From the sequence record phage_1: a stretch of 64,000 nt of DNA; one strand, written 5' to 3'. Shown here piece by piece: positions 1,182 through 29,771 of this stretch. The notes under the pieces were generated by a model. The model ran no database searches and was not told the origin of the DNA. It saw only the letters and a list, made by a program, of their open reading frames with translations. The translations under genes and the position numbers were made by a program. Position 1 is the stretch's first letter, and each line of letters begins with the position of its first letter.

Positions 1182-1192
1182 AGGTATCATCC

Positions 1193-2191: not shown

Positions 2192-2200
2192 GGGGCAGTC

Positions 2201-3124: not shown

Positions 3125-3137
3125 CGGAGTAAAAGCC

Positions 3138-4634: not shown

Positions 4635-4646
4635 GAGGTAACGACA

Positions 4647-5636: not shown

Positions 5637-5638
5637 TC

Positions 5639-6538
5639 ATGCCTATTACATTACACTTTGCACAACGGAAGCCACAGGCGCTCGATAACATCGAAATCTA
5701 TCGCAAGACGCCGGGCAACGCCACAATTGATGTTAATGCACCGGGAACGCCTCTGGCAACCCTTCCGGGTGACGCTACATCGTACGAAGACAACGCTGTG
5801 GAAAACAACACCACTTACCGTTATTGGATAGCTGCGGTTAAAGACGGTGAGCGTGTCTTCAANACCCCNNCCNCCCAAGGGTTTTTTTTANACNCCGGGN
5901 CNGGCCCCCANAAANTGTTATACGGNGNCNGGCACNCNGGATACTTTGGAANANNAACNCCAGNAGANTTATTCACTAACACGGAACTGAACGGCCTCGT
6001 GGTGAATATGTTCAGTTCCGCCGTTGGTGCCTGGCATAAATTCATTTACAAAAACCGTATTCTGTTTATGTCCGATAACTCGATAATAAACGCTAGCCCG
6101 CAGTTCATTTATAACCAGGGGATGATGTACGGCCAGGATGGCAATGGATATGTACCGGGCTGGGCTACTGCACGTAACCAACGGCGCACGGTGACGAAAA
6201 ACGGTTACGAATACGTGGTGCGCTTGCCGTATTTGTTCGACTACAAATTCTGGACGTCTTACGTTGGAAGCGGTAACACTGAGTTGTATCTCGACGGTGA
6301 GTGGTTTAACACCTTCGCGCGCCTGTACAACNACAGGGGGCGGTTTCCGCGCTTTTACGAACTTCCGGTCGGTTCAATCGATTCGGTTACTGCCCAACAA
6401 TCTGCATTCTTTGCGGCTATGAATAACACGTCCAGTCAGTGGTACAACCGTCCACCTTACCCTGAGTCGCCGTCGTGGAGTAACTACGGTACCACTACAA
6501 TACGCTCCATTGCGGTACTTGAACTCGTTCTGCCTTAA
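5639..6538 (+). CDS. Virion protein, paralog type C'
   Basis: Colinear similarity to 2201..3124; start moved to MPITLHF; N-rich patch near 5860-5970. Confidence 0.65.
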   Translation: MPITLHFAQRKPQALDNIEIYRKTPGNATIDVNAPGTPLATLPGDATSYEDNAVENNTTYRYWIAAVKDGERVFXTXXXQGFFLXXGXGPXKXLYXXXHXGYFGXXXPXXLFTNTELNGLVVNMFSSAVGAWHKFIYKNRILFMSDNSIINASPQFIYNQGMMYGQDGNGYVPGWATARNQRRTVTKNGYEYVVRLPYLFDYKFWTSYVGSGNTELYLDGEWFNTFARLYNXRGRFPRFYELPVGSIDSVTAQQSAFFAAMNNTSSQWYNRPPYPESPSWSNYGTTTIRSIAVLELVLP

Positions 6539-11124: not shown

Positions 11125-11766
11125 ATGGAAGCACTTAAGTATAAGTTGTTAGAGAAGCCGTGGTTTATCCTCACGGATGATTTCCATTTCGAGTTTACGT
11201 TGCGCAGCCTCTATCGTGAGCACACCGGAATGGATGCGATGGTAGCATTAACAGGTGTACACCCGGATACTCCGTTATGGGTAACGGTACCGAAAGGATT
11301 TGTAACGGACCTGGCAAGCATTCCAGAAGCGNTNCNNCCTATCCTNCNNCCGGANGGGCCTTGGGCCGCNGCCNCTTGTGTGCATGATTTGTTTTACCAG
11401 AAACGTTCATCGGGGGTCTTGTACCCTGACACTGTCGAAGGTAATCTATCTCGTGCATGTGACAAAACATTCGCTGACCTGATGTTCTTACGTATCATGG
11501 AGGCATTAGGCGTTGACACCTTTATTCGTAAGTCCTTCTACCATGCCGTTCACGAGTTTGGTTGGCCGTCCTATGTAGACGATAACTCTAAGGTGGTTTA
11601 TAGCCGGCCGGTAGAAAAGACGTTGTCCTATAATCGCAACTACCTGTTCTTTAGAACGTCGCGTACGTTAGCGATTCCTGAACACGAACGTGTTGACATT
11701 ACTAATGGGCAACCGGTAAACGTGCAGTATTTGAATATCAAACGTGCGTTCCTGACTACCCCTTAA
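11125..11766 (+). CDS. DUF1353-family protein
   Basis: TVPKGFVTDLASIP...A..VHDLFY...AD..FLRIMEALGV. Confidence 0.75.
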   Translation: MEALKYKLLEKPWFILTDDFHFEFTLRSLYREHTGMDAMVALTGVHPDTPLWVTVPKGFVTDLASIPEAXXPIXXPXGPWAXAXCVHDLFYQKRSSGVLYPDTVEGNLSRACDKTFADLMFLRIMEALGVDTFIRKSFYHAVHEFGWPSYVDDNSKVVYSRPVEKTLSYNRNYLFFRTSRTLAIPEHERVDITNGQPVNVQYLNIKRAFLTTP

Positions 11767-11775
11767 GGAGAGAAA

Positions 11776-12291
11776 ATGTTTCATCCGAATCCTGCCAACT
11801 TCGCGTTAAAAGAGTTGATGCCGCAGGAGTACATCGCGAAATATGGTGAAGGTGCTATTCGTTTCCTTAATCCGTTACTGCTAATCTCGCTCCAACAGAT
11901 TCGTAATCGTTTTGGGCGGATGGTGATTTTAACCAGTTCCCAGCAACAGCGTAGTCTGCGTACCCTGCAGTTCTTTATTAATCAAGAGAAACCAAAGGGT
12001 GGAGATTGGCAAACTCGTGCAAACAAACTGTACGCCGAATCAGGCAGTATGCATAAATTCGGTAATGCGTTTGATGCAACAATGCTTGATACACCGTTGC
12101 AGAAAGTACACGACTATATTGCCGCGAACCCTAACGAGTTTCCGTTTATTCACTTTATCGAGTGCGATATTACCTGGCTGCATGTTGACGTACGCAACCA
12201 GCCTGATATCACCTTCTGGTCACCGACACGTGGTACCGTTAAAGTGGTTAAGCAACAACCCATCGATTGGAGCAAGCTAGTTAAAATCTAA
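11776..12291 (+). CDS. Peptidase M15-family Zn peptidoglycan peptidase
   Basis: RSL...SMHKFGNAFD...WLHVDVRN Zn-ligand motifs (H..D, H). Confidence 0.75.
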   Translation: MFHPNPANFALKELMPQEYIAKYGEGAIRFLNPLLLISLQQIRNRFGRMVILTSSQQQRSLRTLQFFINQEKPKGGDWQTRANKLYAESGSMHKFGNAFDATMLDTPLQKVHDYIAANPNEFPFIHFIECDITWLHVDVRNQPDITFWSPTRGTVKVVKQQPIDWSKLVKI

Positions 12292-13032: not shown

Positions 13033-13581
13033 ATGGCAGTCATCTCTGCAAAAGACCAACTCGTCGCGCTGTTTAATGCTGCAAACAGCGGACTGTCTAG
13101 TCCGTTAACTACTGCTGACGTTACATTCGGCGCTGTTGCTGACTATTCACCAGCAGATTCTGGAGACACTCGCAACTCCAAACTCACCATCACTGCCACC
13201 GCGGAATCCGCTAACTTTACGGGCGAGAAAGAGCTGCACTATACCCGCCTCGATTCATTGAACATCATCGGTGCGAAAGCAGTTACCGCTGACCAGGCAG
13301 AATGGGATACCGATGAAGAAGTGCTTGCTTTTGTCAACGCAGATCTAATTGCCGCCGGTAAAACGGAAGATGCGTTTGCATTGTCTGAACTCACCATTTC
13401 ACGCGAGGACGGCGACAGTGGTGAGAAAATCATCACTGTTATGGTGAAAGAAGGCCACATTAAATACCAGCCTGCCAGCCTTGCAGTTTATACTGTAACG
13501 CAGCCAATCGTTAAAACTGACCTGAGCACCACCAACGGTGAACTAGACGGATTCGTTTCACAAAACAACGTTAGTATGTAA
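13033..13581 (+). CDS. Virion structural protein, NGELDGF family
   Basis: RNSKLTIT....NFTGEKELHYTRL family domain; TTNGELDGF near C-terminus. Confidence 0.65.
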   Translation: MAVISAKDQLVALFNAANSGLSSPLTTADVTFGAVADYSPADSGDTRNSKLTITATAESANFTGEKELHYTRLDSLNIIGAKAVTADQAEWDTDEEVLAFVNADLIAAGKTEDAFALSELTISREDGDSGEKIITVMVKEGHIKYQPASLAVYTVTQPIVKTDLSTTNGELDGFVSQNNVSM

Positions 13582-13605: not shown

Positions 13606-13660
13606 AATAAATAAAAGGTACCTACCTCCCTTCGGGGAGGTAGGGCCTTTATTTTCTTTG
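13606..13660. terminator. Bidirectional terminator (family copy 2); ends the long minus-strand tail/rSAM run
   Basis: CCTACCTCCC-TTCG-GGGAGGTAGG flanked by A- and T-runs. Confidence 0.8.
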
Positions 13661-13661
13661 C

Positions 13662-14333
13662 TTACATGCCGAGTGACTCGGACAATGTTTTTAATCCGGT
13701 GTAATCGCGCTTTTCAGCTAACTCACGGATTTGGCGTTTGTTATCTGCCATTGCTGAGTGCAACACTTGGTCACGTGCAACAATAGCGGCCAGCAACGCT
13801 TTACATTGGGCTACTGTAAACGGACTGTGCTTAGTATTCAGCGTATCGAGCCAGTATTCTGGTGCGGTATCTGCCTGAATGTATTGACCGAGGATGGTAC
13901 GCGACGATTCATCGGCTTGAAAGTGACTACCTTCAAACTCGATATAACCATGGCGCTCATCTTCGTAGCGGTGGTCGAGTTCCAACAGCATCTTCTGCAC
14001 GTCTTCGTAAATGTAACGTGCGGTAGATTTCAGATTCCCGCGAATTTCGTCGAGGTCAATCTCCAGCACATTAGCAATAAACTCTTTCGTGCGTTTCAAT
14101 GTGAAGTTAGCTTCAATCTCCGACATCTCATACAGCTTCATGCGTGCCAGGGCTTCTTTATCAGACATCCCTTCGATGAGATGGTAATGGAGTAATGCAC
14201 AAAATCCGGTACGACCCTGATCCTGCGCACCGATTCGTTCCATGAAATTACCGTGACGATCAATCGGCAAATCACGCTGGAAATAACNGGCGCGGATCTC
14301 TTCGTTCGTTAAGCTTTTGTCAGTAACAGACAT
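13662..14333 (-). CDS. DUF4376-like tail-fibre assembly protein with N-terminal extension
   Basis: C-half FQADESSRTIL....YWLDTLN..PFTVAQCKALLAAI..RDQ.LH fits the DUF4376 pattern. Confidence 0.65.
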   Translation of the reverse strand: MSVTDKSLTNEEIRAXYFQRDLPIDRHGNFMERIGAQDQGRTGFCALLHYHLIEGMSDKEALARMKLYEMSEIEANFTLKRTKEFIANVLEIDLDEIRGNLKSTARYIYEDVQKMLLELDHRYEDERHGYIEFEGSHFQADESSRTILGQYIQADTAPEYWLDTLNTKHSPFTVAQCKALLAAIVARDQVLHSAMADNKRQIRELAEKRDYTGLKTLSESLGM

Positions 14334-14875
14334 TCGTCCTCCTCAATCAGGCCAAGTTCTAACAACAAACCGAAGTCCAGCATCTGGAAGTCCTGATCGA
14401 GGTTACCGGCCCACAACAGAGAAATGTTGTGTTGCTCTTCTTCTTCCAACTGCGGGAGCAGGTGTTCTTCGAAGATTTGACGTTCTGTGTAATAAGCGTC
14501 AACCGGGTTATTGGAGCGTAAGTTACGAATACGCATCCGCGGGAATGACAAGCCCAATGCCACTAAACTTTCAGGACTGGCTTCATCAATAGAGTGACGT
14601 AGCAGTTCGATTTTGTGGCGTGGGTATGCAAGCAGTCGCTTCTCAAAGCCAGGGTTGCGCTTTTCGATTTCCGCGACAGACTCGTGTCCTTTCTCAACGC
14701 AGTAGACCGGGATCATCACATTCAGCCCGTATTTAATCAACAGGCTTTGGATTTCATCAGTGAAGTCTTCCCCTGCCACAATTGCGTGCACATTGTACAG
14801 CTTGCTTTTGCGCAGGAAGCGATCGACCAAGTGCAGTTTACGCTTCGTAAAATTGTGAATCAGTATTGACTTCAT
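14309..14875 (-). CDS. Hypothetical protein of the rSAM cluster (188 aa)
   Basis: GGAG SD before ATG 14875 (MKSILIHNF); overlaps both neighbours. Confidence 0.6.
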   Translation of the reverse strand: MKSILIHNFTKRKLHLVDRFLRKSKLYNVHAIVAGEDFTDEIQSLLIKYGLNVMIPVYCVEKGHESVAEIEKRNPGFEKRLLAYPRHKIELLRHSIDEASPESLVALGLSFPRMRIRNLRSNNPVDAYYTERQIFEEHLLPQLEEEEQHNISLLWAGNLDQDFQMLDFGLLLELGLIEEDECLLLTKA

Positions 14876-16166
14876 TCTGGGCTCCGTTTTGTAATTTTTC
14901 TGCTTCGGCACGTTGGCGTACACAACGTGAACAATAGCACATGGATTTATCATGCAAATCTGATGCGCGAGTCGTACCAGTTTTCTGATACCAATATTCC
15001 GCCGCCATCAGCTTCGCAGTAGTCCAACCACACTGACGACGCTCGGCGTGATACGCTTTACGGTCTTCCAGTGTACCTTCACCGTTTTCGTACGATGCTG
15101 CTGCGCAGCTACCGCAGCTGTGTTTCATCGGACACCCTAAACAAGTTTCTGGGTAGTTGGTGTACTGCGTTTGAATCTCTTCTAACAGCTTACCGCCGTC
15201 CAGGCTCACAAACTCACGACCGACCAGTTCCGCTACAGCAGAGCGGGAAGTTACCGTGGACATGAAACGGTTACAACCGTAAATCTTGCGATCAAAGCCG
15301 AGACAGGTCATGTGCGTCAACGTACCGCAGTACGGTTTCAGGCGTTCTGGGTCGAGACGAACAGAGTCGTCATGTAAGAGTTTGTCACGCCAATCCGGGT
15401 CCCAAGTTGCCATAAAGTTCAGGCCATCCGGGATGATGTGCGTAATCGTGTTACGCGGGTTGGTGTGCAGACCCTTCTCAATCCAGTAGTCCATCACGTC
15501 CATCATCTGGTTCGCGATATCCAACGCCATATGGCGCGGCAGGATATCTTCGTACGTCACGTTACCAGAAATGGTACCACCGCCGGACATGTCAATTAAC
15601 GATTTCATGCTGGCGGCATAGTGCGGCAATGTATCGATCGTAAACGTCGCCTTTACGCCCAGTTCAGCGATGCCAACACTCTTCAGATAATTGTAACCGC
15701 GTACCGCAGCTTCGTACGACCCTTCACGCGTCGTGGTAAAGATACGATATTTGTCATGGACTTCAGGTAAACCATCGATGGAGACCCCAATAGACAGTTT
15801 GTCTTTCCAGCGCTCGATAATTTCTTTGTTCAGCGGACGGTCCAGAAGCGTACCGTTCGTGGAGATACTGAACATATACGGGCGATTGTGTTCTGCGCAT
15901 AACTTCTCTGCGGTTTCAAAGGCCGCCAAAAGAAGTTTAGGCTGCATGAACGGCTCACCACCGATGATATCGATGATGACTTCAACGTTCGGGATATCTT
16001 TATCACGCTCGAAACAAGCGTGGATAAAATCAATCACGTCTGCTACTTTGTTGTTACGCGGATATTTACGCTCGTAGCAGTATTCGCAGTCCAGGTTACA
16101 TGACAAGTTAGTCACAACCTGATACGTGCGTGGTGTGTACTGGATTTGCTGTTCGTTATTACTCAT
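14838..16166 (-). CDS. Radical SAM/SPASM peptide maturase
   Basis: CNLDCEYCYE (CxxxCxxC), IGGEP, SISTNGTLL, SIDGLPEVHDKYR; C-terminal CG..H.TC..YGCNRF..CLGCPMKHSCGSCAA..QC auxiliary-cluster Cys. Confidence 0.9.
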   Translation of the reverse strand: MSNNEQQIQYTPRTYQVVTNLSCNLDCEYCYERKYPRNNKVADVIDFIHACFERDKDIPNVEVIIDIIGGEPFMQPKLLLAAFETAEKLCAEHNRPYMFSISTNGTLLDRPLNKEIIERWKDKLSIGVSIDGLPEVHDKYRIFTTTREGSYEAAVRGYNYLKSVGIAELGVKATFTIDTLPHYAASMKSLIDMSGGGTISGNVTYEDILPRHMALDIANQMMDVMDYWIEKGLHTNPRNTITHIIPDGLNFMATWDPDWRDKLLHDDSVRLDPERLKPYCGTLTHMTCLGFDRKIYGCNRFMSTVTSRSAVAELVGREFVSLDGGKLLEEIQTQYTNYPETCLGCPMKHSCGSCAAASYENGEGTLEDRKAYHAERRQCGWTTAKLMAAEYWYQKTGTTRASDLHDKSMCYCSRCVRQRAEAEKLQNGAQNEVNTDSQFYEA

Positions 16167-17073
16167 TGTTCGCCGCCCGTTTACGCTTAGCAGAAATTAC
16201 ACGGTTGATGTAGTTATACGCATCAACGCCGATAGAACGCGCCAGGCGATTACAGCCGACTTCCAATATCTCTGGGGCGTTCTGAATTTGCTCCTGCGTA
16301 CCGTCGGCGTTAAGCCACAGCACTTCACTGCACGTGTTGCACTCGGTATCGAACATTTTACTGATCGCAAGCCCACATTCAGAATCGTTCTGCATGTTAA
16401 GGCGTTCGATATTGTCGAGTATTTTCCAATACCCGTACATGAAGTTCATGACGTGGTCTGGCGATAACGGTTTCGGCATCATCGCATCAAACAACAACGA
16501 CACACCACCTGGACGGTAATGATAGATTGCTCGGTGCAGCTCGATGAAATCTTCGTACCAGCGTTTATCGCCTAACTGGTCACGCGTCATCACACCCCAG
16601 GTGTAATAATTGTCCAGCTCGTACAGCACTTCCAGCGCTTCGTGATTACCACCGTTTACAAAGTTCATAAACGGACGTTCCGACTTCTTGTAGCCGTCAA
16701 TGGACACAAAGATAAGGTCGAACTGTTTCAGCAACGGCAGATGTGATTTACGCATCTTTAAACCGTTGGTGTACATGTGATGACGGAGGTTCGGATGAGA
16801 CTCCTTCAACTCGTTCACGAAGTCTTCAATCTTACGCTGCGCTAACAGCGGCTCACCGCCCGTCCAATGAATCTCACCGATATCCGGATTCTTCTCTAAA
16901 ATCGAGAGAATCTCTTCACGTTGAAACTCACGAGAAGTATCTTCTCTATCCATGTAATAAGCCCCTCCACAGAAGCTACAGTCTAAGTTACACTTAGAAG
17001 TTGCGACAACCGACAGAATTGACGGTTTGTCGTACAGTTCAGACGAGATCCTGGATTCTACTTGATCTGTCAT
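16159..17073 (-). CDS. Second radical SAM protein (short, reduced C-terminal Cys domain)
   Basis: CNLDCSFCGG, WTGGEPLL, YTNGL, VSIDG; C-term CNTC...GCNR. Confidence 0.85.
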   Translation of the reverse strand: MTDQVESRISSELYDKPSILSVVATSKCNLDCSFCGGAYYMDREDTSREFQREEILSILEKNPDIGEIHWTGGEPLLAQRKIEDFVNELKESHPNLRHHMYTNGLKMRKSHLPLLKQFDLIFVSIDGYKKSERPFMNFVNGGNHEALEVLYELDNYYTWGVMTRDQLGDKRWYEDFIELHRAIYHYRPGGVSLLFDAMMPKPLSPDHVMNFMYGYWKILDNIERLNMQNDSECGLAISKMFDTECNTCSEVLWLNADGTQEQIQNAPEILEVGCNRLARSIGVDAYNYINRVISAKRKRAANNE

Positions 17074-17094
17074 TGCAGGTTGCTCCAGTATTTT

Positions 17095-17982
17095 TTAAAT
17101 ATAATCAATGGCGAATAAAGGATCTTCGTCTACGTTAGCGCCAGGCACCAGTAACATCGGGTCGTGATAGGCAGCTAAAATTTTGTTCAGGTCGGCGTGT
17201 CTTTCGTTCAGACGTTTCAAATCGGCCAACGTTACCGAACGACCACGAATCTCAGAAACAGCTTCTGCTTCTTCTTTCGTTAAATCCACCTTCGTTAAGA
17301 GGAAACTTACCAGCTTACTCAAATCCGCTTCTGTCGCCGGGTAATCCCCATATCGGGTTTGAACCAGGTGTTGCATCCACGGCTTACGAATACGTTTGGT
17401 GATTTCAAAATCGTCAGTCAGCGCATACCAGACAGAACGCTTTTTATCCCACACGAACTTATAGCTATACGCCATCATGTCCGCTAAACGGGTGATGCCG
17501 AGTTCTTTATACCCCTCGATATCGATGTATGGTTCGGTGTCGAAATACGTTTCCGTATCGGCAGGTACCAGTACAAAGTAGTAAGGGAACGAGCCCAGAT
17601 AGTCCGGACTCCACCAACGGCGCGCCATCGGTTTTGCTTCAAGTTCGTCAAACGGTGTAAACATCAGTTCTAAATCGACGCTGTTGTTCAAAATCCCTTC
17701 GCTGAAGAAATACTTACCGTCGACTAACACGCCACGAGAGTTACCATCGCCGTTAAAGATAACGATGGCCTCTGCAACCATATCACGGATCTTAAACGTA
17801 TTTTCTACGGTGTAGTTCTTCTTGTCGGTCAAGAAGCGACCACGAACCTTTGGCCACTCACCAGGAATCTGTGCAATCAGTCTGACTTTGTCAGCAAGGT
17901 GCGCACGCACTGAATCTGGGGAAGATAGATGCAGCGGGTGGTTGAATGTGGTTTTATACGCAAGATGCAAATCGTTTTTCAT
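17095..17982 (-). CDS. Hypothetical protein of the rSAM cluster (295 aa)
   Basis: Long clean ORF with SD between peptide genes and rSAM genes. Confidence 0.65.
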   Translation of the reverse strand: MKNDLHLAYKTTFNHPLHLSSPDSVRAHLADKVRLIAQIPGEWPKVRGRFLTDKKNYTVENTFKIRDMVAEAIVIFNGDGNSRGVLVDGKYFFSEGILNNSVDLELMFTPFDELEAKPMARRWWSPDYLGSFPYYFVLVPADTETYFDTEPYIDIEGYKELGITRLADMMAYSYKFVWDKKRSVWYALTDDFEITKRIRKPWMQHLVQTRYGDYPATEADLSKLVSFLLTKVDLTKEEAEAVSEIRGRSVTLADLKRLNERHADLNKILAAYHDPMLLVPGANVDEDPLFAIDYI

Positions 17983-18004
17983 TTAATACTCCGAACGTTT
18001 TCTG

Positions 18005-18211
18005 TTATCGATTCCCCGCTCCACGGCTACAGCTTCCGCTGCAGGACCAGCTACACCCACCATTACAGTTATAGTGAGAAAGCGGTAAGCCAGCCAGGTT
18101 ATTTGTGGTCGACACGGTGCCCTGGTTAGCGATATAGTTGTTTGCCTGTGCGGTTGTAATGTAACCTTCTACCGTAACGAGACGGTTTCGAATAGTCTTG
18201 AGACTGATCAT
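18005..18211 (-). CDS. Cys-rich precursor-like peptide 3 (68 aa, 4 Cys)
   Basis: Leader ISLKTIRNRL..; core SHYNCNGGCSWSCSGSCS; GGAGG SD. Confidence 0.8.
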   Translation of the reverse strand: MISLKTIRNRLVTVEGYITTAQANNYIANQGTVSTTNNLAGLPLSHYNCNGGCSWSCSGSCSRGAGNR

Positions 18212-18226
18212 ATAAGCCTCCGTCAG

Positions 18227-18631
18227 TTAGGAGTTAGGACCTGAACAACCACCAGAACACGCGCCGGAGCAGTTTGCGGAACAGGATTTGCCACAGCCGC
18301 CAGAGCAGTTACCAGTACACGTTCCGCTACAACCACCAGAACATGAAGAGCTGCAACCCGTACAGCTGCTGCTACAGCCCGATACACAGTTTGCGGAACA
18401 AGTCGACCCACAACCACCCGTAGCAGACCCAGTACACCCGCCAGAACAACTCGAGCAACTAAAAGAGCATGTGCCACCACAGTCATAGTGCGAACGGCCT
18501 TGACCTGCGAACAAGTCGGCGTTATTCGTAGCTTTATTGCGAATGTAGTTTTGCACATTCGTGGTGTTCTTTAAAGCGTTTGCATCGATCGTGTTTAATC
18601 GGTTATTCAGTTCTTTTAATCCAATTGCCAT
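18227..18631 (-). CDS. Cys-rich CxxxC-repeat precursor-like peptide 2 (134 aa, 20 Cys)
   Basis: Leader IGLKELNNRL..; core SHYDCGGTCSFSCSSC(SGGC..)n. Confidence 0.85.
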   Translation of the reverse strand: MAIGLKELNNRLNTIDANALKNTTNVQNYIRNKATNNADLFAGQGRSHYDCGGTCSFSCSSCSGGCTGSATGGCGSTCSANCVSGCSSSCTGCSSSCSGGCSGTCTGNCSGGCGKSCSANCSGACSGGCSGPNS

Positions 18632-18641
18632 TTAATCCCCC

Positions 18642-19034
18642 TTAGCGACCTGAACAGCCGCCGGNGCAGGCCCCGGNGCAGTTTGCGGAANAGNAGCCNC
18701 CNCAACCNNCTGAAAAGTTACCGGTACAGCTACTACTGCAACCACCAGAACAACCAGAGCAACCAGAACAGTTACCGCCACACGTCGAAGAACAGCTACC
18801 GATACAAGAAGCAGAACAGCTTCCTGAACAGCTCGAACAGCCATGCGAGCAACCGTTAGAGCANGTCCAAGAACATGTCCCGCCGCAATCTAGCTGTGCT
18901 TTCGTCCAACCCCCAAATCGGTCTGCTGCATTATGGGCTTTAGAGGCCACTTGCGCCTCGATGCGGGGGCCTGTCGCCATGTTAGCTTCGACNATCTGGA
19001 CGCGGTTTCTGACGTCTTTAATAGATATCGCCAT
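18642..19034 (-). CDS. Cys-rich CxxxC-repeat precursor-like peptide 1 (130 aa, at least 18 Cys)
   Basis: Leader ISIKDVRNRV..; core LDCGGTCSW.CSNGC..; some N bases. Confidence 0.85.
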   Translation of the reverse strand: MAISIKDVRNRVQXVEANMATGPRIEAQVASKAHNAADRFGGWTKAQLDCGGTCSWXCSNGCSHGCSSCSGSCSASCIGSCSSTCGGNCSGCSGCSGGCSSSCTGNFSXGXXGXXSANCXGACXGGCSGR

Positions 19035-19099
19035 TACGCTTCCTTAAAAAGTAGAACGAGCGGACTATGTCCATAAACATAGTCCGGCTCGTAAACAAG

Positions 19100-20302
19100 T
19101 TACTTAGTACCCGCTTCAGCTTGAACATCGTCGCGCGAGGTGAGGCTGTTGTTGACGTGAACAGCAGCCTGCACAACACCTCCATACTGTTTATGGAGGT
19201 AATTCGGGTGTGGGTTATCCGCAGCCGCATGGTTCGCCAGATTCTGGTTTGCCTGCGAAATTGCGTTGGTGTTGTTTATAACCTGAGTTTTAAGACTGTT
19301 GATTTGTCCTTGCAGGTTATCAATTTGCTGTTGGAAGTCTTTGCCCTGATTCTCAAGATCCGTGACGCGCTGATTTGTTTCATTCAGTGCAGACTGAAGA
19401 TCGTTAACCATCTTCTGTAATTGCAACACCAGAGAATTAAGGTTAGCTAATGCTAACGACATTTTCTGGTAATTTTGAGCAACCACGTTAAGCTGGTCGT
19501 TCCACGCGGCTAACGAAGCCACAATTGCATCGATGCGTTGCCCCAACGCCGTGTCTGCTNCTCTTAAGTCGCCGATATCGTTGATAGTGGCGTCAATGGC
19601 AGTCTGTACACTTTGAATCAGGGCACGAATCTCCGTCTCCGTCAGGCCATTAACCTGATGAATGTCGAGATTGTGTACGTTACCTTCGGCGTTGATGTGT
19701 GTATTTAAGGCGTCGAGGAAGTCGTTTCTCAGACCGTCCAGAATACCTTTAATTTCTTCCAGCTGTACTGCAGAGCCGGAGTTAATCGCATCTTTAATCC
19801 CCGCGAGTACGGTAATGATATACTCAAAACCGTAGATATCGCCAAGGTCTTTATACGTCGGGGCGGACGGGAACGTATCGGGTACGTTTCGAAGATCCTT
19901 GAAGTCCACCACACGGTCTTCAATTTTCAGCGACGCAATCGCTTGTCGGATGCCTTCGACGTTCGCGGACTGAAAACCACCAACGACTTGCGCAGAGACT
20001 TCGATATCAGTAGGAATGGCCGAGTTAGTTACCACCACACCCATGACCACTTCGCGGTTCTTGGTCATTTTCTGATATGCAGTATGTGCAAAAATCAGTT
20101 CGTAGTCTGTGCCGCGTTTGTACGGGTAGACACCTGGTTTATTCGCAGCTGCCAAGCGGAAGGTATCCGCGTAGAAAGCTCCGTCAGGAAAAGCAAAAGC
20201 CCGGTTAACTTTACCAGAACCTAACGTAATACGCCGTGTAACGGCGTTCGACGTTAATGTCCCGGTAAGGTCGAGCGGGTACTGATGAATGATTTCGGCC
20301 AT
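19100..20302 (-). CDS. Coiled-coil tail fibre / virion structural protein
   Basis: N-term YPLDLTG typical of phiKZ-like tail paralogs; long heptad region; HAAADNPHPNYL fibre His motif; AAGGAG SD before ATG 20302. Confidence 0.7.
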   Translation of the reverse strand: MAEIIHQYPLDLTGTLTSNAVTRRITLGSGKVNRAFAFPDGAFYADTFRLAAANKPGVYPYKRGTDYELIFAHTAYQKMTKNREVVMGVVVTNSAIPTDIEVSAQVVGGFQSANVEGIRQAIASLKIEDRVVDFKDLRNVPDTFPSAPTYKDLGDIYGFEYIITVLAGIKDAINSGSAVQLEEIKGILDGLRNDFLDALNTHINAEGNVHNLDIHQVNGLTETEIRALIQSVQTAIDATINDIGDLRXADTALGQRIDAIVASLAAWNDQLNVVAQNYQKMSLALANLNSLVLQLQKMVNDLQSALNETNQRVTDLENQGKDFQQQIDNLQGQINSLKTQVINNTNAISQANQNLANHAAADNPHPNYLHKQYGGVVQAAVHVNNSLTSRDDVQAEAGTK

Positions 20303-20349
20303 TGCCAAACTCCTTTGATTGGGGCTTCCTTGCCCCATAGCGCTATCTG

Positions 20350-23300
20350 TTAGGTACGGAACATAAGATTGACCTGGATAATATCAGGCTGTTGACGTCC
20401 TCTCTCGTTCACCCAATCGTGTGCAATCGTTAACGTAAGATCATCGCCTTCCCACGACACGATCGGTGGTGGGAATAAACCCTGAGCGCCCGTGGTAACA
20501 ACCGGGATTGCACCTGCCACATTCGTAAACGTATAGCTACGACTGTTCAGAACAACCGGTGTGCCGTGGGTCTCTCCCGGCTGTGGTAAGATTTGAATCT
20601 TACTATCCGAAAGATCGGTGGTGATTGGTAGACCCCCAGCGTCCGTGAAAAGCCAAGAGCAAATATNCTGGTTNGCTGTTTCGAGCGCTGAAGAACTCTT
20701 CACAGCCGCGAAAGTAAAGGTGCACGGCACGCCTGCTGGCAGAGAGTGCTGTTTGTGGTGCACGGTATGTGGTGACGGCAATAACACTTCTGGATTTTCG
20801 TCAATGTTAACATCCGTACCTTCCGCCTCGACGTTGTAGAAAAAGCCATCCACCGCCTCCCATGGGGCAACGTGGACATTAAAGGTCGTTTCTACTCCCG
20901 GTGTACCTGGGACGACGAATTTACTTTGCACCACCACCATCATAGTTCTTGAGGTCGGTGAGAAAGCGGGCGTTGGAATACCTACCCACTCCATTCCCAA
21001 CGATGCCGCTTCACCGTTCTCATCAGCCGTTACCGTCGCGATTGTTGTAGGATGTTTCCAAAACGCCCCCGACTTGTTTGCCTGAGTAAACGCCGGCAAA
21101 GTTTTCAAGCCTTCGAAACGTTTGGACACCATCGCTTTACCGCGACGCTGTGCGTCAGATACGGTATAAAGCAACTGACTATCCAGATAGCCTTTCGTAG
21201 CATCGATCGACAAAGGACCCATCGCTTCTTTACGCAATGGTGCCAGTCTGCCCGTTGCTGCATCCCTTCCCACTTCCACATCATGCTTATTCTCAACCGC
21301 CGCATGTTCCAACAGTTGTTTCACCGCCCCCAATCGCTTAGCATGTTCGACGTTAGTCTCGACGACTCGTGACGAGCCCGTTTTAACATACCCGATATAG
21401 AGTTCCGTTTCAGTGTCTGGATGTTGAATCACGTCCATTACGTACTTCGGTGTACCATTTTCTACCTTGGCGTGCAGGTAGAATGTCCGGTTCTGATGGT
21501 TTGTTGGAAATGCTGCGCTGAGGTCAATATACCACGTAGGCAGCTTATAAGTGCTCGAGCCGAAACGCAGGTCAACTTCCTCAGTCACATATACCAGCCA
21601 ACCTTCGGCTGTTTCCACNCCAGCAATGACGACCGATTCAGTCGGGCCACTAAAATTAGGAGCCGCGACAAAATCACTCGACGACATTGCGATACCACCA
21701 CAATAGACGTAGTCGAGAGATGAGTTGTGTAGCATCACCTGATCACGATGAGCCAGATAAGCTGGGCTGACTGGAGTGTGTGATGGTGCCATGCGTCCAA
21801 TGCCGTGTGGAGCAGAAGAACGCGTCCAGGTACCATTAGACAGCGTAAGACCAACACCGTAGTTAAGCGCACCCAAGTCGCCAATTTGGCGCAAGGTTAA
21901 CGTGTGTGGAAGATACAACCCGAACTGCGTACCATCTACTGACACCAGTGTAGGTTGTCCCGGCCGGCGTGTTTTTCCTCCCGTTATCTCACCCAACGTA
22001 GCATAGTTCAAGCCATAGTCGAGGTTGTTATAGAAGTCAAACAATGCCAATATCGCTGCCGGGAATGTTACCTGCCCGTTACTGATTGTTGGTTTCAGTG
22101 TAAAGTAGTAGATATCCAACAAGTTAACATTGTTCACAGTACGCGTACATGCTACTTGTGCTAACGTGAGCGGTGTGGCCGTACCAATGCCGATGAACCA
22201 AATGGAGAACAGTGCCTTTCCGGCGTTATTTGCGGCAAGGATAAATTCCGAAGCATAACCATTCGCAGCGCCAGCCGGTGCGCCGTCGATAATCATCTGC
22301 TTCATCTTATCCCATTCGGCTTGTGACAGCGTCAACCGATCGGCATGAATCGTGAAAGTGCCAGAAACGTTGTGGTAAGGGAATGTTTCTGGTCCTGTGC
22401 AATACCAGCCGTTTAACTCTGTACCAGGCGACGCCGGTGTAACAATGTGGCACATCTGCGACAGATTCTCGTACGTGGTAGAATCTACTACACGACGATT
22501 GTTAGTTGGTCCATACCCCGCTTTACCTGAATAAGTGGTGTTCGGATCAAACTCAACTTCAATTGCCAAACGGGTACGCGGCTGTGACAACCAGATAAGT
22601 CTGGAATTCGCTCCCAGAGTCAGCGGATACGCCATGCCCAGCTCGTAGATAGAACCACGACCTTGGTTTAACATTACCGCACTAAAACTTCTGGCAGTGA
22701 AGTTGTAGTCGCACGACAGGTACTCGTACCAACTCACACCGTCATCTAACGTTGTAATCGTGACATAAGGCATTAGGTCGCGATCGCCTGCATGTCCTTG
22801 CGAAACGATATACTTGTCTTGCGATGTTGCAAAGGTTCGGTTATTAGCTTGACCTTCGCCCCATTTCCGGCTCGGAATCCCAATCTCAGCGCCACCGTTA
22901 TAACGAACCGTGGTAAGATCGGCCACAATAGGGAATCGATCAGCACCTTCCAGCGTTATCGTCATTGAACTACAATCAACAACAAAGCTTGACACCCATT
23001 GTTTAAAGTTAATAGTTTGCCCTGTAGTAGAAGCAAACCAAACCGTTGGAGTTAAACCAACACGAAAGTTCAGCCCATCCACACCAATCGCGTGATTACA
23101 TTCCGGACCATGGACAAATTTCGTCGCACTATTCCACTTCGCCGATGCGTCTGCGTAGATTTGTGTTACTGGCGCTACCAACACATCTGTATCAGAACGN
23201 TTCTGACCCTGACGCAAGTAGATATTATCTCCCGACGTTAACATCCCACCTGTTAACACATCCGCCACAAACGTGTTGCTACCACCCAGATTAAGTTCGT

Positions 23301-25533
23301 CGAGTGCGATGCTACGCATACTCACGAAATAGTCACCGGAGGTAAGCACAGTACGGAGCAGATAAACCCGCTCGTTGCAAACGATCAAATCGTTTGTTGA
23401 TGGATCAACAACCCATGGAGCGGTTGTAACTGACACCGGCCCGTTACCATTTCGGTAATCGCCCAACTGAACTTTAACAACACGATGATGTTTTGCATGG
23501 TCAATGGTGCCGTCAAAGATGACCAGGTAGTACGCACCGTCACTGCCTAAGCAGATCATTGCATCTGTACCGGTAATCACAATAGCAACCAGATTCACCC
23601 CAGGATACGCCGACATTCCAGCGGGTCGATAACGTACGGACGTCTGCTGCATATTTTCCAGCGTATTGCTTGGCGACACATCAGCATAGGCGTAATAGAT
23701 AGCCCAGTCACCTGGTGGATTCCCGTTAGAACCATTACGGAGCGAGTAAACCTTACCAGACTCGTAACGCGCCAAACCTTTCTGCCAGGTTTGGTTTTTG
23801 GTATACCCTTCGTAGTTCCCCTGGACAGGTATAGGCAAGAAGTTATTGTTGCCGTACGATGATCCGCCGACAGTCCATGCGGGCAACAGCGTAGCAATCT
23901 TGTCATTCAGTGTGTCAATCTTTTGTTCAAGCAAGAAGCCCTGACGCGAAGTGACCATCTTATCCGAGGTAGTGTCGATTGCATCCCACAGTTTAGCCAA
24001 ACCTGTAACAGACGTGGATGCGTACGGCACGTTATCGAGATCTGCAATGGTGTGGGTGTGCGTTGTAAGCGCTTTGCCTGATAGCACGGTGCGCAACGCA
24101 TTAGTAACCGGTTTCTCCAGCGGCCCGGTATTGTTCATCTTCTCAATACCGAAATCTGCCGCGGTTAAGGTCAGATGCATCTGCCCGTTTGAATCTAATA
24201 CAAACCCTTTACCATTGACTGTATACGTGTCGTCCACATATCCGTCGAGTTTGTTCTTCAAGTCAGTAACAGCTTTTTGGGAAATCGCTGTGGANGCCGC
24301 AGCGGACGCCGAAAGGTTAGTAATCGCAAACAAACCCTGCACAGTTGTGGTTGCTGCAGGCAGCTCCGCATTCATGTAAACTTTGTTTGTTTCTTTACCA
24401 GAGCCGTAAATCTTCAACGTGTCGCTGGACTTGAAGTAGGCGTTTGCTGGAAGTATCTTCACCGAGGTCAAGTACATCTTAACCATATCCGGTGTAACGA
24501 GATACACGCTGTTATACACAGGTGCAAGCACACCTGCATCATAAGCGCCCCACTTGTCACCTGCTTTACCCGAGTGAACCCAAAGCGTGTTCAGACCAGC
24601 ACTGAACTCCGTAGCGATACCCGGTTCGTTGTTATCCCGGTCAGCTTTTAATACCAGCGGTTTTGTCGAGGTGATAATGAACTTCTCACCCTTCATGCTG
24701 ATAACGTGACCAGACGTTGTTTGGAACGTAATCGCGTCGTTATTCAGAACACGCATACGGCCCAGTAAATCGCCCAGGGTATTATCCAGAAGCATGTCAA
24801 CGTGTTTCTGTTGGATGCCACTGGTAGACATTAACGTCACTAACTCTGCCAGTGTACGTCCAAACGCTTTAGTCGCATCCACGGCCTTACCGAGCACAGG
24901 GAGTGCGCCAATGTCACCGCAGGTGTAACCATGTGCATTTTTAATCAGGTGGTGTTGATACATTTCGTCATCAAACACCTGTTTACCGTTCTGATAAATC
25001 AAATCGGTAACTTCGGCAAATGCCTCATCCAGTTCGTGGGCGCGCTCTAAAATACCCAGACGGATATCTTCCAACGCCTTTACGATTTCATCGCGAAGAA
25101 TCGCTTCTTCGAGATCTTTTGGCGGGTCGATTGGCGAGATAATCGGTGGATATTTCATCAGCTCAGACCAATCGCAGTTGCGCGGGTCTTTCATATCCGT
25201 CTTAACCAGATACTTGCCGATTTCAGAAGCAGGGATGCGGTACTGTCGACCAACCGACAACAACTCGTATTCTACCTCTGTGGCGTTCAGCAGCATTATG
25301 CTGCCGTATATTGCATCGTTCTCAGCCTCGGCTAATTCCTGGAAGTAATGTCCTAAGAAATAATCAAGACCTTCTATTAACTTGCGTTTGGTTCCGGTTA
25401 TTTTATCGGTAACGGTTAACGTTAACCCGATGCGATAGAACGGTGCTTCGACGGGAATGACCGTCGAATAACGGTTCGGGTAAGTAGCGGTACTGAGGGT
25501 ACCGTTAAACTGCGCCGCATCTTCTCTCGGCAT
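20350..25533 (-). CDS. Giant tail fibre / baseplate-attached protein (about 1727 aa)
   Basis: H..KNAHG.T motif, ATTTVQGL and ASTSVTGL fibre repeats, LTAADFGIEKMNNT..KPV motif; AGGAG SD before ATG 25533. Confidence 0.7.
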   Translation of the reverse strand: MPREDAAQFNGTLSTATYPNRYSTVIPVEAPFYRIGLTLTVTDKITGTKRKLIEGLDYFLGHYFQELAEAENDAIYGSIMLLNATEVEYELLSVGRQYRIPASEIGKYLVKTDMKDPRNCDWSELMKYPPIISPIDPPKDLEEAILRDEIVKALEDIRLGILERAHELDEAFAEVTDLIYQNGKQVFDDEMYQHHLIKNAHGYTCGDIGALPVLGKAVDATKAFGRTLAELVTLMSTSGIQQKHVDMLLDNTLGDLLGRMRVLNNDAITFQTTSGHVISMKGEKFIITSTKPLVLKADRDNNEPGIATEFSAGLNTLWVHSGKAGDKWGAYDAGVLAPVYNSVYLVTPDMVKMYLTSVKILPANAYFKSSDTLKIYGSGKETNKVYMNAELPAATTTVQGLFAITNLSASAAXSTAISQKAVTDLKNKLDGYVDDTYTVNGKGFVLDSNGQMHLTLTAADFGIEKMNNTGPLEKPVTNALRTVLSGKALTTHTHTIADLDNVPYASTSVTGLAKLWDAIDTTSDKMVTSRQGFLLEQKIDTLNDKIATLLPAWTVGGSSYGNNNFLPIPVQGNYEGYTKNQTWQKGLARYESGKVYSLRNGSNGNPPGDWAIYYAYADVSPSNTLENMQQTSVRYRPAGMSAYPGVNLVAIVITGTDAMICLGSDGAYYLVIFDGTIDHAKHHRVVKVQLGDYRNGNGPVSVTTAPWVVDPSTNDLIVCNERVYLLRTVLTSGDYFVSMRSIALDELNLGGSNTFVADVLTGGMLTSGDNIYLRQGQXRSDTDVLVAPVTQIYADASAKWNSATKFVHGPECNHAIGVDGLNFRVGLTPTVWFASTTGQTINFKQWVSSFVVDCSSMTITLEGADRFPIVADLTTVRYNGGAEIGIPSRKWGEGQANNRTFATSQDKYIVSQGHAGDRDLMPYVTITTLDDGVSWYEYLSCDYNFTARSFSAVMLNQGRGSIYELGMAYPLTLGANSRLIWLSQPRTRLAIEVEFDPNTTYSGKAGYGPTNNRRVVDSTTYENLSQMCHIVTPASPGTELNGWYCTGPETFPYHNVSGTFTIHADRLTLSQAEWDKMKQMIIDGAPAGAANGYASEFILAANNAGKALFSIWFIGIGTATPLTLAQVACTRTVNNVNLLDIYYFTLKPTISNGQVTFPAAILALFDFYNNLDYGLNYATLGEITGGKTRRPGQPTLVSVDGTQFGLYLPHTLTLRQIGDLGALNYGVGLTLSNGTWTRSSAPHGIGRMAPSHTPVSPAYLAHRDQVMLHNSSLDYVYCGGIAMSSSDFVAAPNFSGPTESVVIAXVETAEGWLVYVTEEVDLRFGSSTYKLPTWYIDLSAAFPTNHQNRTFYLHAKVENGTPKYVMDVIQHPDTETELYIGYVKTGSSRVVETNVEHAKRLGAVKQLLEHAAVENKHDVEVGRDAATGRLAPLRKEAMGPLSIDATKGYLDSQLLYTVSDAQRRGKAMVSKRFEGLKTLPAFTQANKSGAFWKHPTTIATVTADENGEAASLGMEWVGIPTPAFSPTSRTMMVVVQSKFVVPGTPGVETTFNVHVAPWEAVDGFFYNVEAEGTDVNIDENPEVLLPSPHTVHHKQHSLPAGVPCTFTFAAVKSSSALETXNQXICSWLFTDAGGLPITTDLSDSKIQILPQPGETHGTPVVLNSRSYTFTNVAGAIPVVTTGAQGLFPPPIVSWEGDDLTLTIAHDWVNERGRQQPDIIQVNLMFRT

Positions 25534-25554
25534 TGCAAACACTCCTAATCTGTA

Positions 25555-25595
25555 ATAAAACGGAGACCGCCCTCCCAATAACGGAAGGGCGGTTT
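25555..25595 (-). terminator. Internal terminator/attenuator between two giant fibre genes
   Basis: Imperfect ACCGCC..GGCGGT stem followed by T-run on minus strand. Confidence 0.5.
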
Positions 25596-25628
25596 ACCTA
25601 CGGACTACCCGCCCGTAGGCAGTCCGTC

Positions 25629-28600
25629 CTAAGAGGCCCACTCACCCGAGTTGTTGCCTTCGTTTCTACGTTCAGTATCCAACGTTTGTAAAATCCAATC
25701 CCATGTCCTGGTGGGGATGTGGAATGGATTACGCTTCTCAATGAGAATCGTCTCGCCACCCGTGCGAAGTTCCACCGGTGTCGTTTCAGTAATCACGAAC
25801 ATCGGATTACCACTACTACCCACACCGTTAATAGTGAACTTCGCTTGTAGCGGCGGCACAGAACCTTCCGGAGGCACGAACACGATGTGAATTGGCTGCA
25901 TCGGTTTCGTGCGGGCAAGAGTCCCAGATATCTGAACAGCTGTTGTCGATGCACTGAAAGGTATAACATTACCCGGAATTTTCTCACTACCCACGACGAT
26001 ATATCCAGGGTAGTTAGAGAGCATTGTCCCATTTACCGACACAAAACGCTCAGTTTGAGTTGGGCGATAAGCCCGCATAAAGCCGTACTTCCATTCACCA
26101 CCGTTAGACGTATAGTCTGCAGGAGCCGACTCAAGTAGCGGAGCACCACGTTTCTGCAGCCCTTTATAAAACGGCGCTGGGAGTTTACCGTTCGGTGCAA
26201 GTTCCGGATAACCCTCACTTGCAGCAGACATCGTGATGTATTCCGTAACCGGGTGATCAACGTTATCTCCAAATGACGCAAAAGGTACCGTTGTTACTGT
26301 CATCTCCTCGTGGCCGGAAGACTGTCTATCTGGTGTCCTTTCAATATACGACTCAAACAGTGAACGTAAATAATGGAAACGATTTATATCCACATCTGAG
26401 ATGATCGGCTGCATCAAACCGTGGTTAATAGTCACGTTGTCTCCAGTTTCAATACCGGAAACGTGGATGGCTAGCGCCCCACCTTTAAAGTAATCGATCG
26501 CATCAAACGGAATGTCGTATTCCATTTCGTAAACCTGCACCAGCGGATTGGCTATCAACTTAGAAACCATTGAGATGCGCAGTACCTGCGTATCAACAAT
26601 GTATCGATAACGTACAAGCCAACGATCTCCAAGCGGCGCAAGCTCACTATCGGTATGAACCGAAAGAAAATCTAAACACTCGGTAGATTGGCTCGTCAGG
26701 TTTTTAATTACCCTCGGATTTTCAAGCACCTTATTTGTAACACTGCCCTGCGTGGTCGAGATGATGCCTCCAGTTGCTTGGTTATAAGGAGACGTGATGA
26801 AGCCACAATTCAATTCTGGACGATTGCCACTCCATCTCAGTACCCTAGTCTTGCTTTTATCATCTGCAGACGGGGCCATGAAGTTTAATGTGATATCGCG
26901 ATCGCGAACAGTTTGCGCTTCCGACAAATCAACATCGACCACCACAGAACCTTCAAACGTCGCCATCCCTTTTTCTTTCGGGTTGCTTGGTGTAAACCAG
27001 CAGTACGGTGATGCGCTTTCTGTGGAGACAACCGCTCCAACAAACACTAGGCTTGAAATGGTGCTATCAAATTTATAATCGAATAACCCTCGGTCTAATC
27101 GAATATAGTGGTTACCAGAAACTGGACTATTAGGGTACGCATAAAGCCACTGTTTAGGCAACGGATCGACTTTGTTTAGCGGTAACATTTTTGGGTTATC
27201 CGTCAACGACCAGTCGGCATTACTCACTCCGTGTGCCAGACGTGTTTCGAAGTGCCGTTTAAGTTCGGACGCCATGCCAAAATCAAACGTCGTTTCAAAC
27301 TCGTAAGTCGTACCTGCAACCAATCCCGTCTCTGGTACATCAATATGTCCGATATAGCCGCGTTCCAAGTTAATACCTTCCGTGTCCACAATAGGTTCGG
27401 CGCGCGAATATAACGCATCGGTTATCATGTTCACATAGAGGTAATGCCTTAAACCATTCGGCGTCTTAACAAACTCCTGCAGGCGGGCAACTTTGGTGTT
27501 TTTATCCGAGGCCCCAACCGCAAAGTCACCGTCGTAAATTGTGAAACGAATTGCGGCTGCTTTAGCGCTATCGTTACACTCGGCACGGAATGCTAAGCAG
27601 TGTTGCTTCCACCCCTCCTTGACAGTCGCCTCCAGATACCCCGCTTCTGTAATACCCGCACCGATAATTTCACCGTCCAGATAAACAGAAACAGCACCAC
27701 CGCCACGAACCCAAATCCGCAGCTTACCAGAGTCGCAACGAACCCACGTTTTCGCCAAGAGGTTAACGACTGACAAATCACCCATTCCGGTTGTCGTTAA
27801 ACCAATCTGCGCACCGTAGTTCGTTTCCGGGACGGCAACCTCAAACCCACTAAAATCAATACCGGCACCGGTATTAATTACCGCGTTCTGCCACGTTCTT
27901 TCCATACGGTTATCTGGAGAGAACCACTGGAACATCGGTGTGGTTTGCAGGTCTATCGAACCAGATACCGTCCCCTCTTTACGTGCGCCATTTAACAGAT
28001 AGAAATAATTCAAATCCGTTATGGCGAGTGTGGTACGTGCTGACCCCACAGTCCAAGTCTTACCACGCACAGCGGCAAAATCGGTCACGGAATCCTCTTT
28101 CGCGTTTGCTAGCGCAGCTGCAACTACGTCTAAACGTTTTGACAAATCGTTCAGAACGTTCGGGGTAACGCCGCGATTACCCGACAAGCCGTTTAGGTTG
28201 GTAGAATATCGAGCGATACCGGGAACTGTTTGAGAAGCCGTTGGGATCTGTAAATCGGCGAAGTTGTGATGATGGCCTTTATCGCTAAGACCGGTAACTG
28301 CTTCTGCCAACGCATCAGAAAGTGGTTTATCGACGTCAGCTGTGTTATCAGCCAAGTCCAGACCCAAATCCTTTTTCGTTAGCGTTCGGCTACCAGTGTC
28401 CATCGGCTGGTTATTCAGCAGCGTTGTCTTCCTGACGTACGAAGACAGATCACCCTCGTACGGTAAGAGCGAAGCTGGGGTGGCTGCTTGTCCTTTGACT
28501 ACATCGCTCGGCTTATCAGTCAGCGTCACAACGCCGGGTTCAGAGGTCGTGGCGGGTTTGGCTGTAACCTTCCCGGTGACGGGATCGGCTTTTGACCCTT

Positions 28601-29759: not shown

Positions 29760-29771
29760 TCAAAAATCTCC

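Follow-up and report, generated by a model that had tools for sequence, protein, structure and literature searches.

Cysteine-tail peptides of an SPN3US-like jumbo phage: putative tail-fibre-type subunits and candidate substrates of a radical SAM enzyme pair

What purpose do small cysteine-rich peptides serve when they are encoded between virion genes and two radical S-adenosylmethionine (rSAM) enzymes in the genome of a giant bacteriophage? The question is raised by three paralogous genes, called here pep1, pep2 and pep3, in sequence record phage_1, of which a stretch of 64,000 nucleotides was analysed (the window; all coordinates refer to the whole of it). The window is part of a SPN3US-like jumbo phage (Seoulvirus), a giant Salmonella/E. 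coli phage, and between positions 14000 and 20400 its identity with Escherichia phage vB_EcoM_Lh1B is 99.8%, and with Salmonella phage SPN3US 97.8%. The initial annotation regarded the three products as precursor peptides, in which a leader is recognised by the enzymes and a core is modified. Our answer, given with moderate confidence and derived from sequence comparison, is that the three genes would encode small tail-fibre-type subunits rather than leader-core antibiotic precursors, and that their Cys tails would be cross-linked by a paired rSAM machine.

The three peptides and the tail-fibre repeat

It was confirmed that three open reading frames (ORFs) with a shared N-terminus and a shared junction are present, as the initial annotation had described. 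All of them have the same layout, namely a short N-terminal helix, one repeat of the kind found in fibre shafts, the junction, and a Gly/Ser-rich tail in which every fourth residue is a Cys. In the N-terminal region the motif I[SG][LI]K.[ILV].NR[LV]..[VI][ED] could be aligned in all three peptides. In pep1 the fibre repeat that comes after this helix motif is degenerate (TTNNLAGLPLSHY), the junction reads CNGGCSWSC and the terminus is GAGNR; in pep2 the fibre repeat KATNNADLFAGQGRSHY stands just ahead of the first Cys, and the junction CGGTCSFSC leads into the Cxxx tail (repeat and junction at about 18455-18535, Cys tail at about 18239-18481); in pep3 the fibre repeat reads KAHNAADRFGGWTKAQL and the junction CGGTCSWTC, and here too a Cxxx tail follows.

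The window carries 328 scattered single-base N positions, eight of them inside pep3; these were treated as masked, translated as X and left unfilled, and related phages were compared as homologues only. The junction had been described as C-[GN]-G-[TG]-C-S-[WF]-S-C, and this holds for all three peptides in the looser form C-x-G-x-C-S-[WF]-x-C, since pep3 has Thr after the Trp (its codon, ACN, codes for Thr whatever the masked base). The sequence SHY[DN]C was found in pep1 and pep2 as claimed, while pep3 reads AQLDC, and the Asn-rich middle part of the N-terminal region stands out in pep1 and pep2 but is weak in pep3. The great difference in core length (4, 20 and about 20 Cys) was borne out by the alignment. 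The gaps between the Cys residues are almost always of three residues and sometimes of two, and the cores are composed of Ser, Gly, Cys, Thr, Ala and Asn, with no Asp or Glu.

Since family scans had left the N-terminal region unexplained, a 58-position profile of this region and the junction (alignment A4) was searched against 1.84 billion representative proteins. It gave 70 matches, about one third of which are long tail fibres of 569-1746 amino acids (aa) that have no Cys and carry the PHROG annotation 'long tail fiber distal subunit' together with Pfam Peptidase_S74. Each of these Cys-free fibres matches profile positions 14-49 (approximately) in 5-16 tandem copies, for example ANNATNLGGQNAAHY, and the consensus of the repeat, ANNAxxLxGQxxxxYY, aligns with the peptide segment just before the Cys residues. 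The Asn-rich segment and the SHY[DN]C sequence can be read as this fibre repeat, because KATNNADLFAGQGRSHY of pep2 matches the tandem repeats; judged by this homology, the part of the 'leader' next to the Cys residues is most simply one copy of the long-tail-fibre shaft repeat. In one larger protein (P0184) collagen-like repeats, the whole 'leader' and a Cys tail stand together. Two of the features by which a phage tail fibre would be recognised, homology to the shaft repeat and a location in the tail-fibre gene block, are present in the peptides. They differ from the long tail fibre distal subunits, with which they share the repeat, in what follows it: the long fibres have no Cys and end in a self-cleaving Peptidase_S74 chaperone, whereas here the repeat leads into a Cys tail that would need separate enzymes for its folding or stapling.

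These results do not favour the proposal that the N-terminal region is an enzyme recognition element. What precedes the first Cys is a fibre repeat which in relatives lies inside fibres of 250-570 aa, and in one phage module (L009) a peptide of 79 aa has almost no N-terminal region. No protease or exporter gene was recognised in the cluster, and among phages of the genus the core has changed less than the 'leader'.

That the genes are real is indicated by several features. A Shine-Dalgarno sequence (GGAGG, AAGGGGGA and AAGGAAG) stands 5-6 nucleotides (nt) ahead of each ATG, and the stop codon of pep3 falls within the ribosome-binding site of pep2. When the pep2 core was compared with that of phage STsAS, codon positions 1, 2 and 3 differed at 5, 4 and 50 sites, respectively, which amounts to 49 synonymous and 4 non-synonymous codon changes. 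Within the genus the ratio of synonymous to non-synonymous codon changes is 49:4 in the core and 17:10 in the N-terminal part of pep2, and 42:2 and 16:13 in the corresponding parts of pep3. Such ratios point to strong purifying selection on the peptide genes and to a Cys core that is more constrained than the N-terminus within the genus, which is the reverse of a classical RiPP (a peptide made on the ribosome and modified after translation). Phages of Seoulvirus, Erskinevirus, Derbicusvirus and Wellingtonvirus, like 17 jumbo-phage contigs of IMG/VR, all have the three paralogues in one order (long, long, short); the reading frame is open in all four genera compared, and the numbers of Cys are nearly fixed across orthologues (21 in pep3, 20-23 in pep2, 2-4 in pep1). 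Chance ORFs in low-complexity DNA were considered and rejected, because the differences between orthologues concentrate at third codon positions.

In the GenBank/RefSeq record of SPN3US there is one coding sequence in this region (18223-18558, minus strand, 336 nt, gp166), and pep1 and pep3 are unannotated. The annotated 111 aa frame was rejected as a real gene, as it contains stops in relatives. Several other phage records have no annotated gene under the peptide matches. Two IMG/VR jumbo contigs (L016 and L017, at about 3975-6000) have a rearranged block order with a rSAM2-like gene between pep3 and pep2. In another protein (P0173, 210 aa) a pep1-type sequence runs past ...CSKGAGG into a non-Cys domain of about 145 aa, which is either a natural fusion with a distal domain or an artefact of assembly or frameshift.

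The radical SAM pair and its recurrence in tail regions

The larger of the two enzymes, rSAM1, has a CX3CX2C motif at C23/C27/C30 and SPASM cysteines (C280, C288, C298, C342, C345, C351, C354, C379) which are conserved across 23 sequences. Thus the signature of the TIGR04115 maturases, CX3CX2C with a SPASM domain of 7-8 Cys, can be found in rSAM1, and the adjacent gene for a Cys-x-x-x repeat target can be found at the locus. The best family matches of rSAM1 are TIGR04115 (3e-36, 125.6 bits) and PapB (1.1e-32), both below the cut-off, which for TIGR04115 is curated at 350 bits; weaker matches include HxsB (4e-21) and SCIFF, and the best solved structure is CteB (3e-10). True TIGR04115 members in other viral contigs (L062, L048, L092) reach 434-499 bits and stand as single maturases beside a Cxxx-repeat protein. 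Since rSAM1 and its closer relatives (in L008 and L010) reach about 125-157 bits with TIGR04115 and almost the same with PapB, their group would be a sister group of these two families, outside their membership. The peptides too stay below the thresholds of the target models (TIGR04114 16.3 bits against a cut-off of 20; TIGR04117 sub-threshold). The rSAM core begins at about residue 18, so rSAM1 has no N-terminal RiPP recognition element (RRE), and no PqqD-like RRE was recognised either on rSAM1 or as a separate protein, the Pfam scan giving only Radical_SAM and Fer4_12.

The shorter enzyme, rSAM2, has its CX3CX2C motif at residues 28/32/35; towards the C-terminus three Cys (245, 248, 274) are conserved, which do not make up a full SPASM domain, and the family matches of rSAM2, HxsC (6e-12) among them, are non-specific. 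The gp165-like protein, encoded next to it, has 49 homologues and is the sole non-rSAM partner that is conserved with the module. Its AlphaFold2 model is of high confidence (pLDDT, the predicted score in the local distance difference test, 90.4); nevertheless a Foldseek comparison of this model with the PDB returned nothing below E 0.2, a wide VIA-align comparison reached no more than Z 5.4 over 69 residues, which lies within noise, with no winged-helix match above noise, and the ESM Atlas held no usable match. A complex prediction with pep1 scored 0.00, which counts neither for nor against binding.

The module, consisting of a Cys-tail protein, the gp165-like protein, a short rSAM and a SPASM rSAM, was found in phages and prophages that are not related to one another, and always in a tail region. 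In L008, L009, L011 and L040-L044 the three other genes, with a gp165-like homologue among them, follow the gene of the Cys-tail protein. The nearest cellular relative of rSAM1 (38% identity) is encoded by Deferribacter abyssi inside a prophage tail module (L008), where a GpJ-like tail protein is followed by three genes, the last of them fibre-like, and then by the gp165-like protein, the short rSAM and the SPASM rSAM; the fibre-like protein (L008:2490-3398, 302 aa) ends in ...ATNADQLGGQAGSYYRCSDCSWTCSSSC... and has 28 Cys in all. In a T4-like contig (L010) a fibre of 568 aa ends in ...NAVTLGGQPPDFYTCGGSCSWSC... and has PF27846 on record. The junction and the Cys tail are the C-terminus of real tail-fibre proteins of 250-570 aa in other phages, and the Cys-tail proteins of L039, L043 and L044 have strong tail-fibre N-termini (PHROG E down to 1e-54). 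The peptide of 79 aa in L009, with an N-terminus of 13 residues, begins in another frame 2 nt past the stop of a T7-like fibre gene of 607 aa, an arrangement (1192-3256) that possibly makes a fusion by frameshift or couples the translation of the two tightly.

When IMG/VR was scanned with the rSAM1 alignment, 429 viral contigs were found to encode relatives, and a Cxxx-repeat ORF was present near the rSAM1 relative in 70 of the 74 viral loci examined. Many viral Cxxx-repeat proteins are of 170-570 aa and have a globular C-terminal domain after the repeats, so that the repeats sit in the middle of the fibre, which fits a shaft element. Because rSAM1 is a peptide maturase of the SPASM type and substrate and enzyme genes stand together in many phages, it is very likely that the two adjacent rSAM enzymes act on the peptides.

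Comparison with known systems places the locus beside, rather than within, families already described. The targets modelled as TIGR04114/TIGR04117 and PF27846 (tSAM_targ_Cxxx_rpt) have, as here, a Cys at every fourth residue and a radical SAM/SPASM neighbour, whereas the tail-fibre repeat and the CSW junction distinguish our peptides from the canonical ones, and instead of the one maturase of the canonical TIGR04115 loci two rSAMs and the gp165-like protein are encoded. We know of no published chemistry for the CXXX-repeat/TIGR04115 family, and our literature search found none. PapB (freyrasin) and CteB are, like rSAM1, SPASM enzymes acting on repeated Cys motifs; however, the peptide cores have no Cys-X3-Asp/Glu motifs of the freyrasin kind, which yield an S-to-Cbeta/Cgamma thioether, and so no Asp/Glu acceptor (CX3D), rSAM1 has no N-terminal RRE-like extension and scores below the cut-offs, and ranthipeptide substrates are short secreted peptides, while the substrates proposed here resemble fibre proteins. 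The closest experimental precedent is CrpC/CrpA of Methanococcus voltae, where a large repeat protein rich in Cys receives thioethers (ranthionines) from a SPASM rSAM (PMC13692751). Paralogous substrates of the CrpA type share their N-terminus, as pep1-pep3 do, although CrpC belongs to another family (TIGR04463, 57.9 bits with rSAM1), acts on 17-residue repeats with C-X-X-Q/D, and is archaeal without virion context. A SPASM rSAM and a shorter rSAM are combined on a repeat peptide in HxsB/HxsC and TrnC/TrnD as well; for thuricin CD two rSAMs are described as acting together on one substrate (PMC12093266). The similarity to these systems is weak and their targets are different (His-Xaa-Ser repeats, sactipeptides), and synteny and a single natural fusion are what support the pairing proposed here.

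Weighing the possible roles of the Cys tails

The reading which we favour can be formulated as follows. The Cys tail would be the substrate of rSAM1 and its shorter partner rSAM2 working as a pair, with the gp165-like protein probably as a substrate-handling or assembly factor. The chemistry would most likely consist of serial radical-mediated thioether cross-links of the Cys residues, of sactionine or ranthionine type, by which a tail that is flexible at first would become a rod or knot held by covalent staples. After modification the protein would remain uncleaved and take its place in the fibre/baseplate apparatus beside gp167-170. Modification of the tail, the type of cross-link, the virion location and the role of the gp165-like protein are what we infer from the comparisons given above.

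Different roles for the two enzymes had been suggested in the initial annotation, in which one rSAM would modify the Cys repeats and the second would make a triceptide-type cyclophane at the junction W/F. The aromatic residue is nearly invariant in about 50 jumbo-phage copies and in several remote fibres (Trp in nearly all copies, Phe solely in pep2 of a Seoulvirus subgroup), W-[S/T]-C is formally an aromatic-X-X motif, and weak matches of the rSAMs to the YhhB, AmcB and FxsB models could be noted. Such a division of labour is nevertheless very improbable. Both rSAMs are kept in the modules L009, L011, L039 and L043, which have no junction Trp, so the motif does not co-occur with a dedicated enzyme; in L043 (6137-8197) the two are naturally fused into one rSAM2-rSAM1 protein of 686 aa with CX3CX2C at residues 23 and 299, a sign that they share a single task; and rSAM2, with just three conserved C-terminal Cys, has no full SPASM domain. 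Against the cyclophane-forming families (XyeB, GrrM/OscB, YhhB, FxsB, AmcB) the best scores are 59 bits for rSAM1 (YhhB, cut-off 445) and 36 bits for rSAM2, the cut-offs being 310-450 bits, and dozens of other rSAM families score at least as well. It should be added that a hydrophobic residue such as Leu or Met holds a similar early position in the targets of single-rSAM TIGR04115 systems: their Cys runs start with CxxxC[ST]G[L/M/I/V]C in 26 of 46 non-redundant cases, and in 36 of the 46 a hydrophobic residue stands in the first 12 positions of tails that are otherwise almost free of such residues. The conserved aromatic of the junction may therefore have a structural role or be a start signal, and the Trp itself could still carry a modification. 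Since the modules without Trp keep both enzymes, the two are fused in L043 and no cyclophane family scores specifically, rSAM1 and rSAM2 look like one machine acting on the Cys tail, in a layout like that of HxsB/HxsC.

Two further explanations concern the fate of the tail itself. If the peptides were classical RiPPs, a leader of about 48 residues would be bound, the core cross-linked and the leader cut off, and the small product set free would be a bacteriocin, a host-takeover or an anti-defence factor. The architecture resembles leader and core, the N-terminus is common to the three paralogues, the rSAM/SPASM enzyme is related to RiPP maturases, and the shared N-termini of the CrpA/CrpB system have been read as leaders; furthermore the absence of gp161-166 from the virion proteome would make this end of the operon non-structural. 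We consider this explanation unlikely, because family scans recognised no protease, exporter or immunity gene in the operon and no RRE-containing protein, the latter in line with the start of rSAM1 directly at its rSAM core, and because the fibre-repeat nature of the 'leader', the stronger conservation of the core within the genus and the constant position of the module in tail regions all speak against it. Alternatively the Cys tails might remain unmodified, serving as metal- or Fe-S-binding (metallothionein-like) elements or becoming disulfide-rich tips after lysis, while the rSAMs act on another substrate. Regular Cys arrays are able to bind metals, and AlphaFold shows no fold for the unmodified tail; this possibility has nonetheless a slim chance, as Cxxx-repeat genes adjoin SPASM rSAM genes in unrelated phage lineages at the frequency given above, the TIGR04115 family is defined by this same co-occurrence, and no other candidate substrate is conserved with the module.

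Several points weigh against small fibre-type subunits with cross-linked tails. In SPN3US virions gp167-173 were detected and none of gp161-166 (PMC5694885, including Suppl. Table 1); the three peptides themselves were undetectable in that proteomic study, because the SPN3US annotation has only a wrong-frame ORF at their place. The cross-linking of the tails is deduced by comparison, and rSAM1 falls far short of the TIGR04115 membership threshold (125.6 against 350 bits). The cores without Asp and Glu do not contain the usual PapB-type ranthionine acceptors, the peptides have no distal receptor-binding domain, and pep1 has just 2-4 Cys. The AlphaFold model of pep2 (from a 22-row alignment) has a pLDDT of 43.7, the helix at residues 5-20 alone being moderately confident. 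Contigs of 17-20 kb from RNA libraries (runs X9-X11 and X1) span the N-free stretch 14300-18664 at about 98% identity, and they may be carried-over DNA, hence no proof of transcription.

The operon and its significance

The three peptide genes belong to one tightly packed minus-strand operon and lie between the genes of virion proteins gp167-170 and the rSAM genes (Table 1). Downstream of the peptides the gp165-like protein, rSAM2, rSAM1, the phrog_7988 protein and the DUF4376 protein follow on the same strand with short gaps or overlaps, and a hairpin, situated between the convergent genes at 13033-13581 (plus strand) and 13662-14333 (minus strand), closes the operon as a terminator. The true start of the gp162-like protein is probably an internal Met (Met27), because its PHROG match begins at residue 27 and 188 aa are annotated in SPN3US. 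This protein and the gp161-like one are specific to the lineage of the phage; the remote modules have neither.

Table 1. Position of the peptide genes and of neighbouring features in the window
Feature	Position	Strand	Description
pep1	18005..18211	-	68 aa, 4 Cys; phrog_6085 (E 2.8e-25)
pep2	18227..18631	-	134 aa, 20 Cys; phrog_6085 (E 1.8e-41); weak TIGR04114/TIGR04117 matches
pep3	18642..19034	-	130 aa, 18 visible Cys and masked positions; 21 Cys in orthologues
gp165-like accessory protein	17095..17982	-	295 aa, no Cys, no family annotation; phrog_8030
rSAM2	16159..17073	-	short radical SAM protein, 304 aa
rSAM1	14838..16166	-	radical SAM/SPASM maturase, 442 aa; start overlaps the end of rSAM2 by 8 nt
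gp162-like protein	14309..14953	-	phrog_7988; ORF of 214 aa, overlaps the end of rSAM1 by 116 nt
gp161-like DUF4376 protein	13662..14333	-	last gene of the operon
Bidirectional terminator-like hairpin	13621..13644	both	perfect 10 bp stem, 7 GC pairs, T-runs on both strands
Stable stem-loop	19056..19092	-	16 bp, -24.3 kcal/mol, z -3.7; U-rich run after it (19045-19055)
gp167-like virion structural protein	19100..20338	-	N-terminal domain, then a long coiled coil; directly upstream of the peptides

On the other side of the peptides, the stable stem-loop is placed between the stop codon of the gp167-like gene and the ribosome-binding site of pep3, and it could be an attenuator or a hairpin that stabilises the mRNA, by which the ratio of the peptides to gp167 would be set. 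The N-terminal domain of the gp167-like protein (phrog_2163) is common to three giant proteins of 1742, 1376 and 1237 aa encoded upstream (19100-33485, minus strand); as a stub consisting of this domain and a coiled coil, it could be what the three small proteins dock on. In the proteomic study of SPN3US, gp168-170 were termed baseplate or tail-fibre candidates (PMC5694885). Beyond the operon, at 11125-12291 on the plus strand, genes lie for a tail assembly chaperone (phrog_1158) and for a protein resembling endolysins (phrog_894).

A more general proposal, to which we assign a little less than an even chance, is that phages use radical SAM chemistry of the RiPP type for building their virions, Cxxx fibre segments being converted into covalently laddered shafts or tips that resist proteases and heat. 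In the SPN3US-like version three mini-subunits, possibly a heterotrimer docked on the gp167 stub fibre, would depend on an obligate rSAM pair together with the gp165-like protein.

The combination of CXXX repeats and rSAM enzymes is known bioinformatically, and what we have not found described is its virion-structural setting; our literature search returned no description of this locus or of rSAM-modified fibres, which is no proof of newness. Three genes of the gp161-166 block of SPN3US are missing or mis-framed in the reference annotation, and the favoured reading, if true, would supply a function for this conserved block of five to eight genes. SPN3US, for which amber-mutant genetics and virion proteomics already exist, is a tractable system in which the chemistry of the CXXX repeats could be settled and the cooperation of two rSAM enzymes tested. 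Should the tails prove to be cross-linked and present in the virion, radical SAM peptide chemistry would extend from small secreted products to viral structural proteins, and, since more than 400 viral contigs encode relatives of the maturase, a widespread, so far undescribed class of enzymatically cross-linked virion proteins would come into view, which would also explain why SPASM maturases are common in phage genomes. An enzymatically stapled fibre element would, in addition, give phage engineering a new handle on virion stability.

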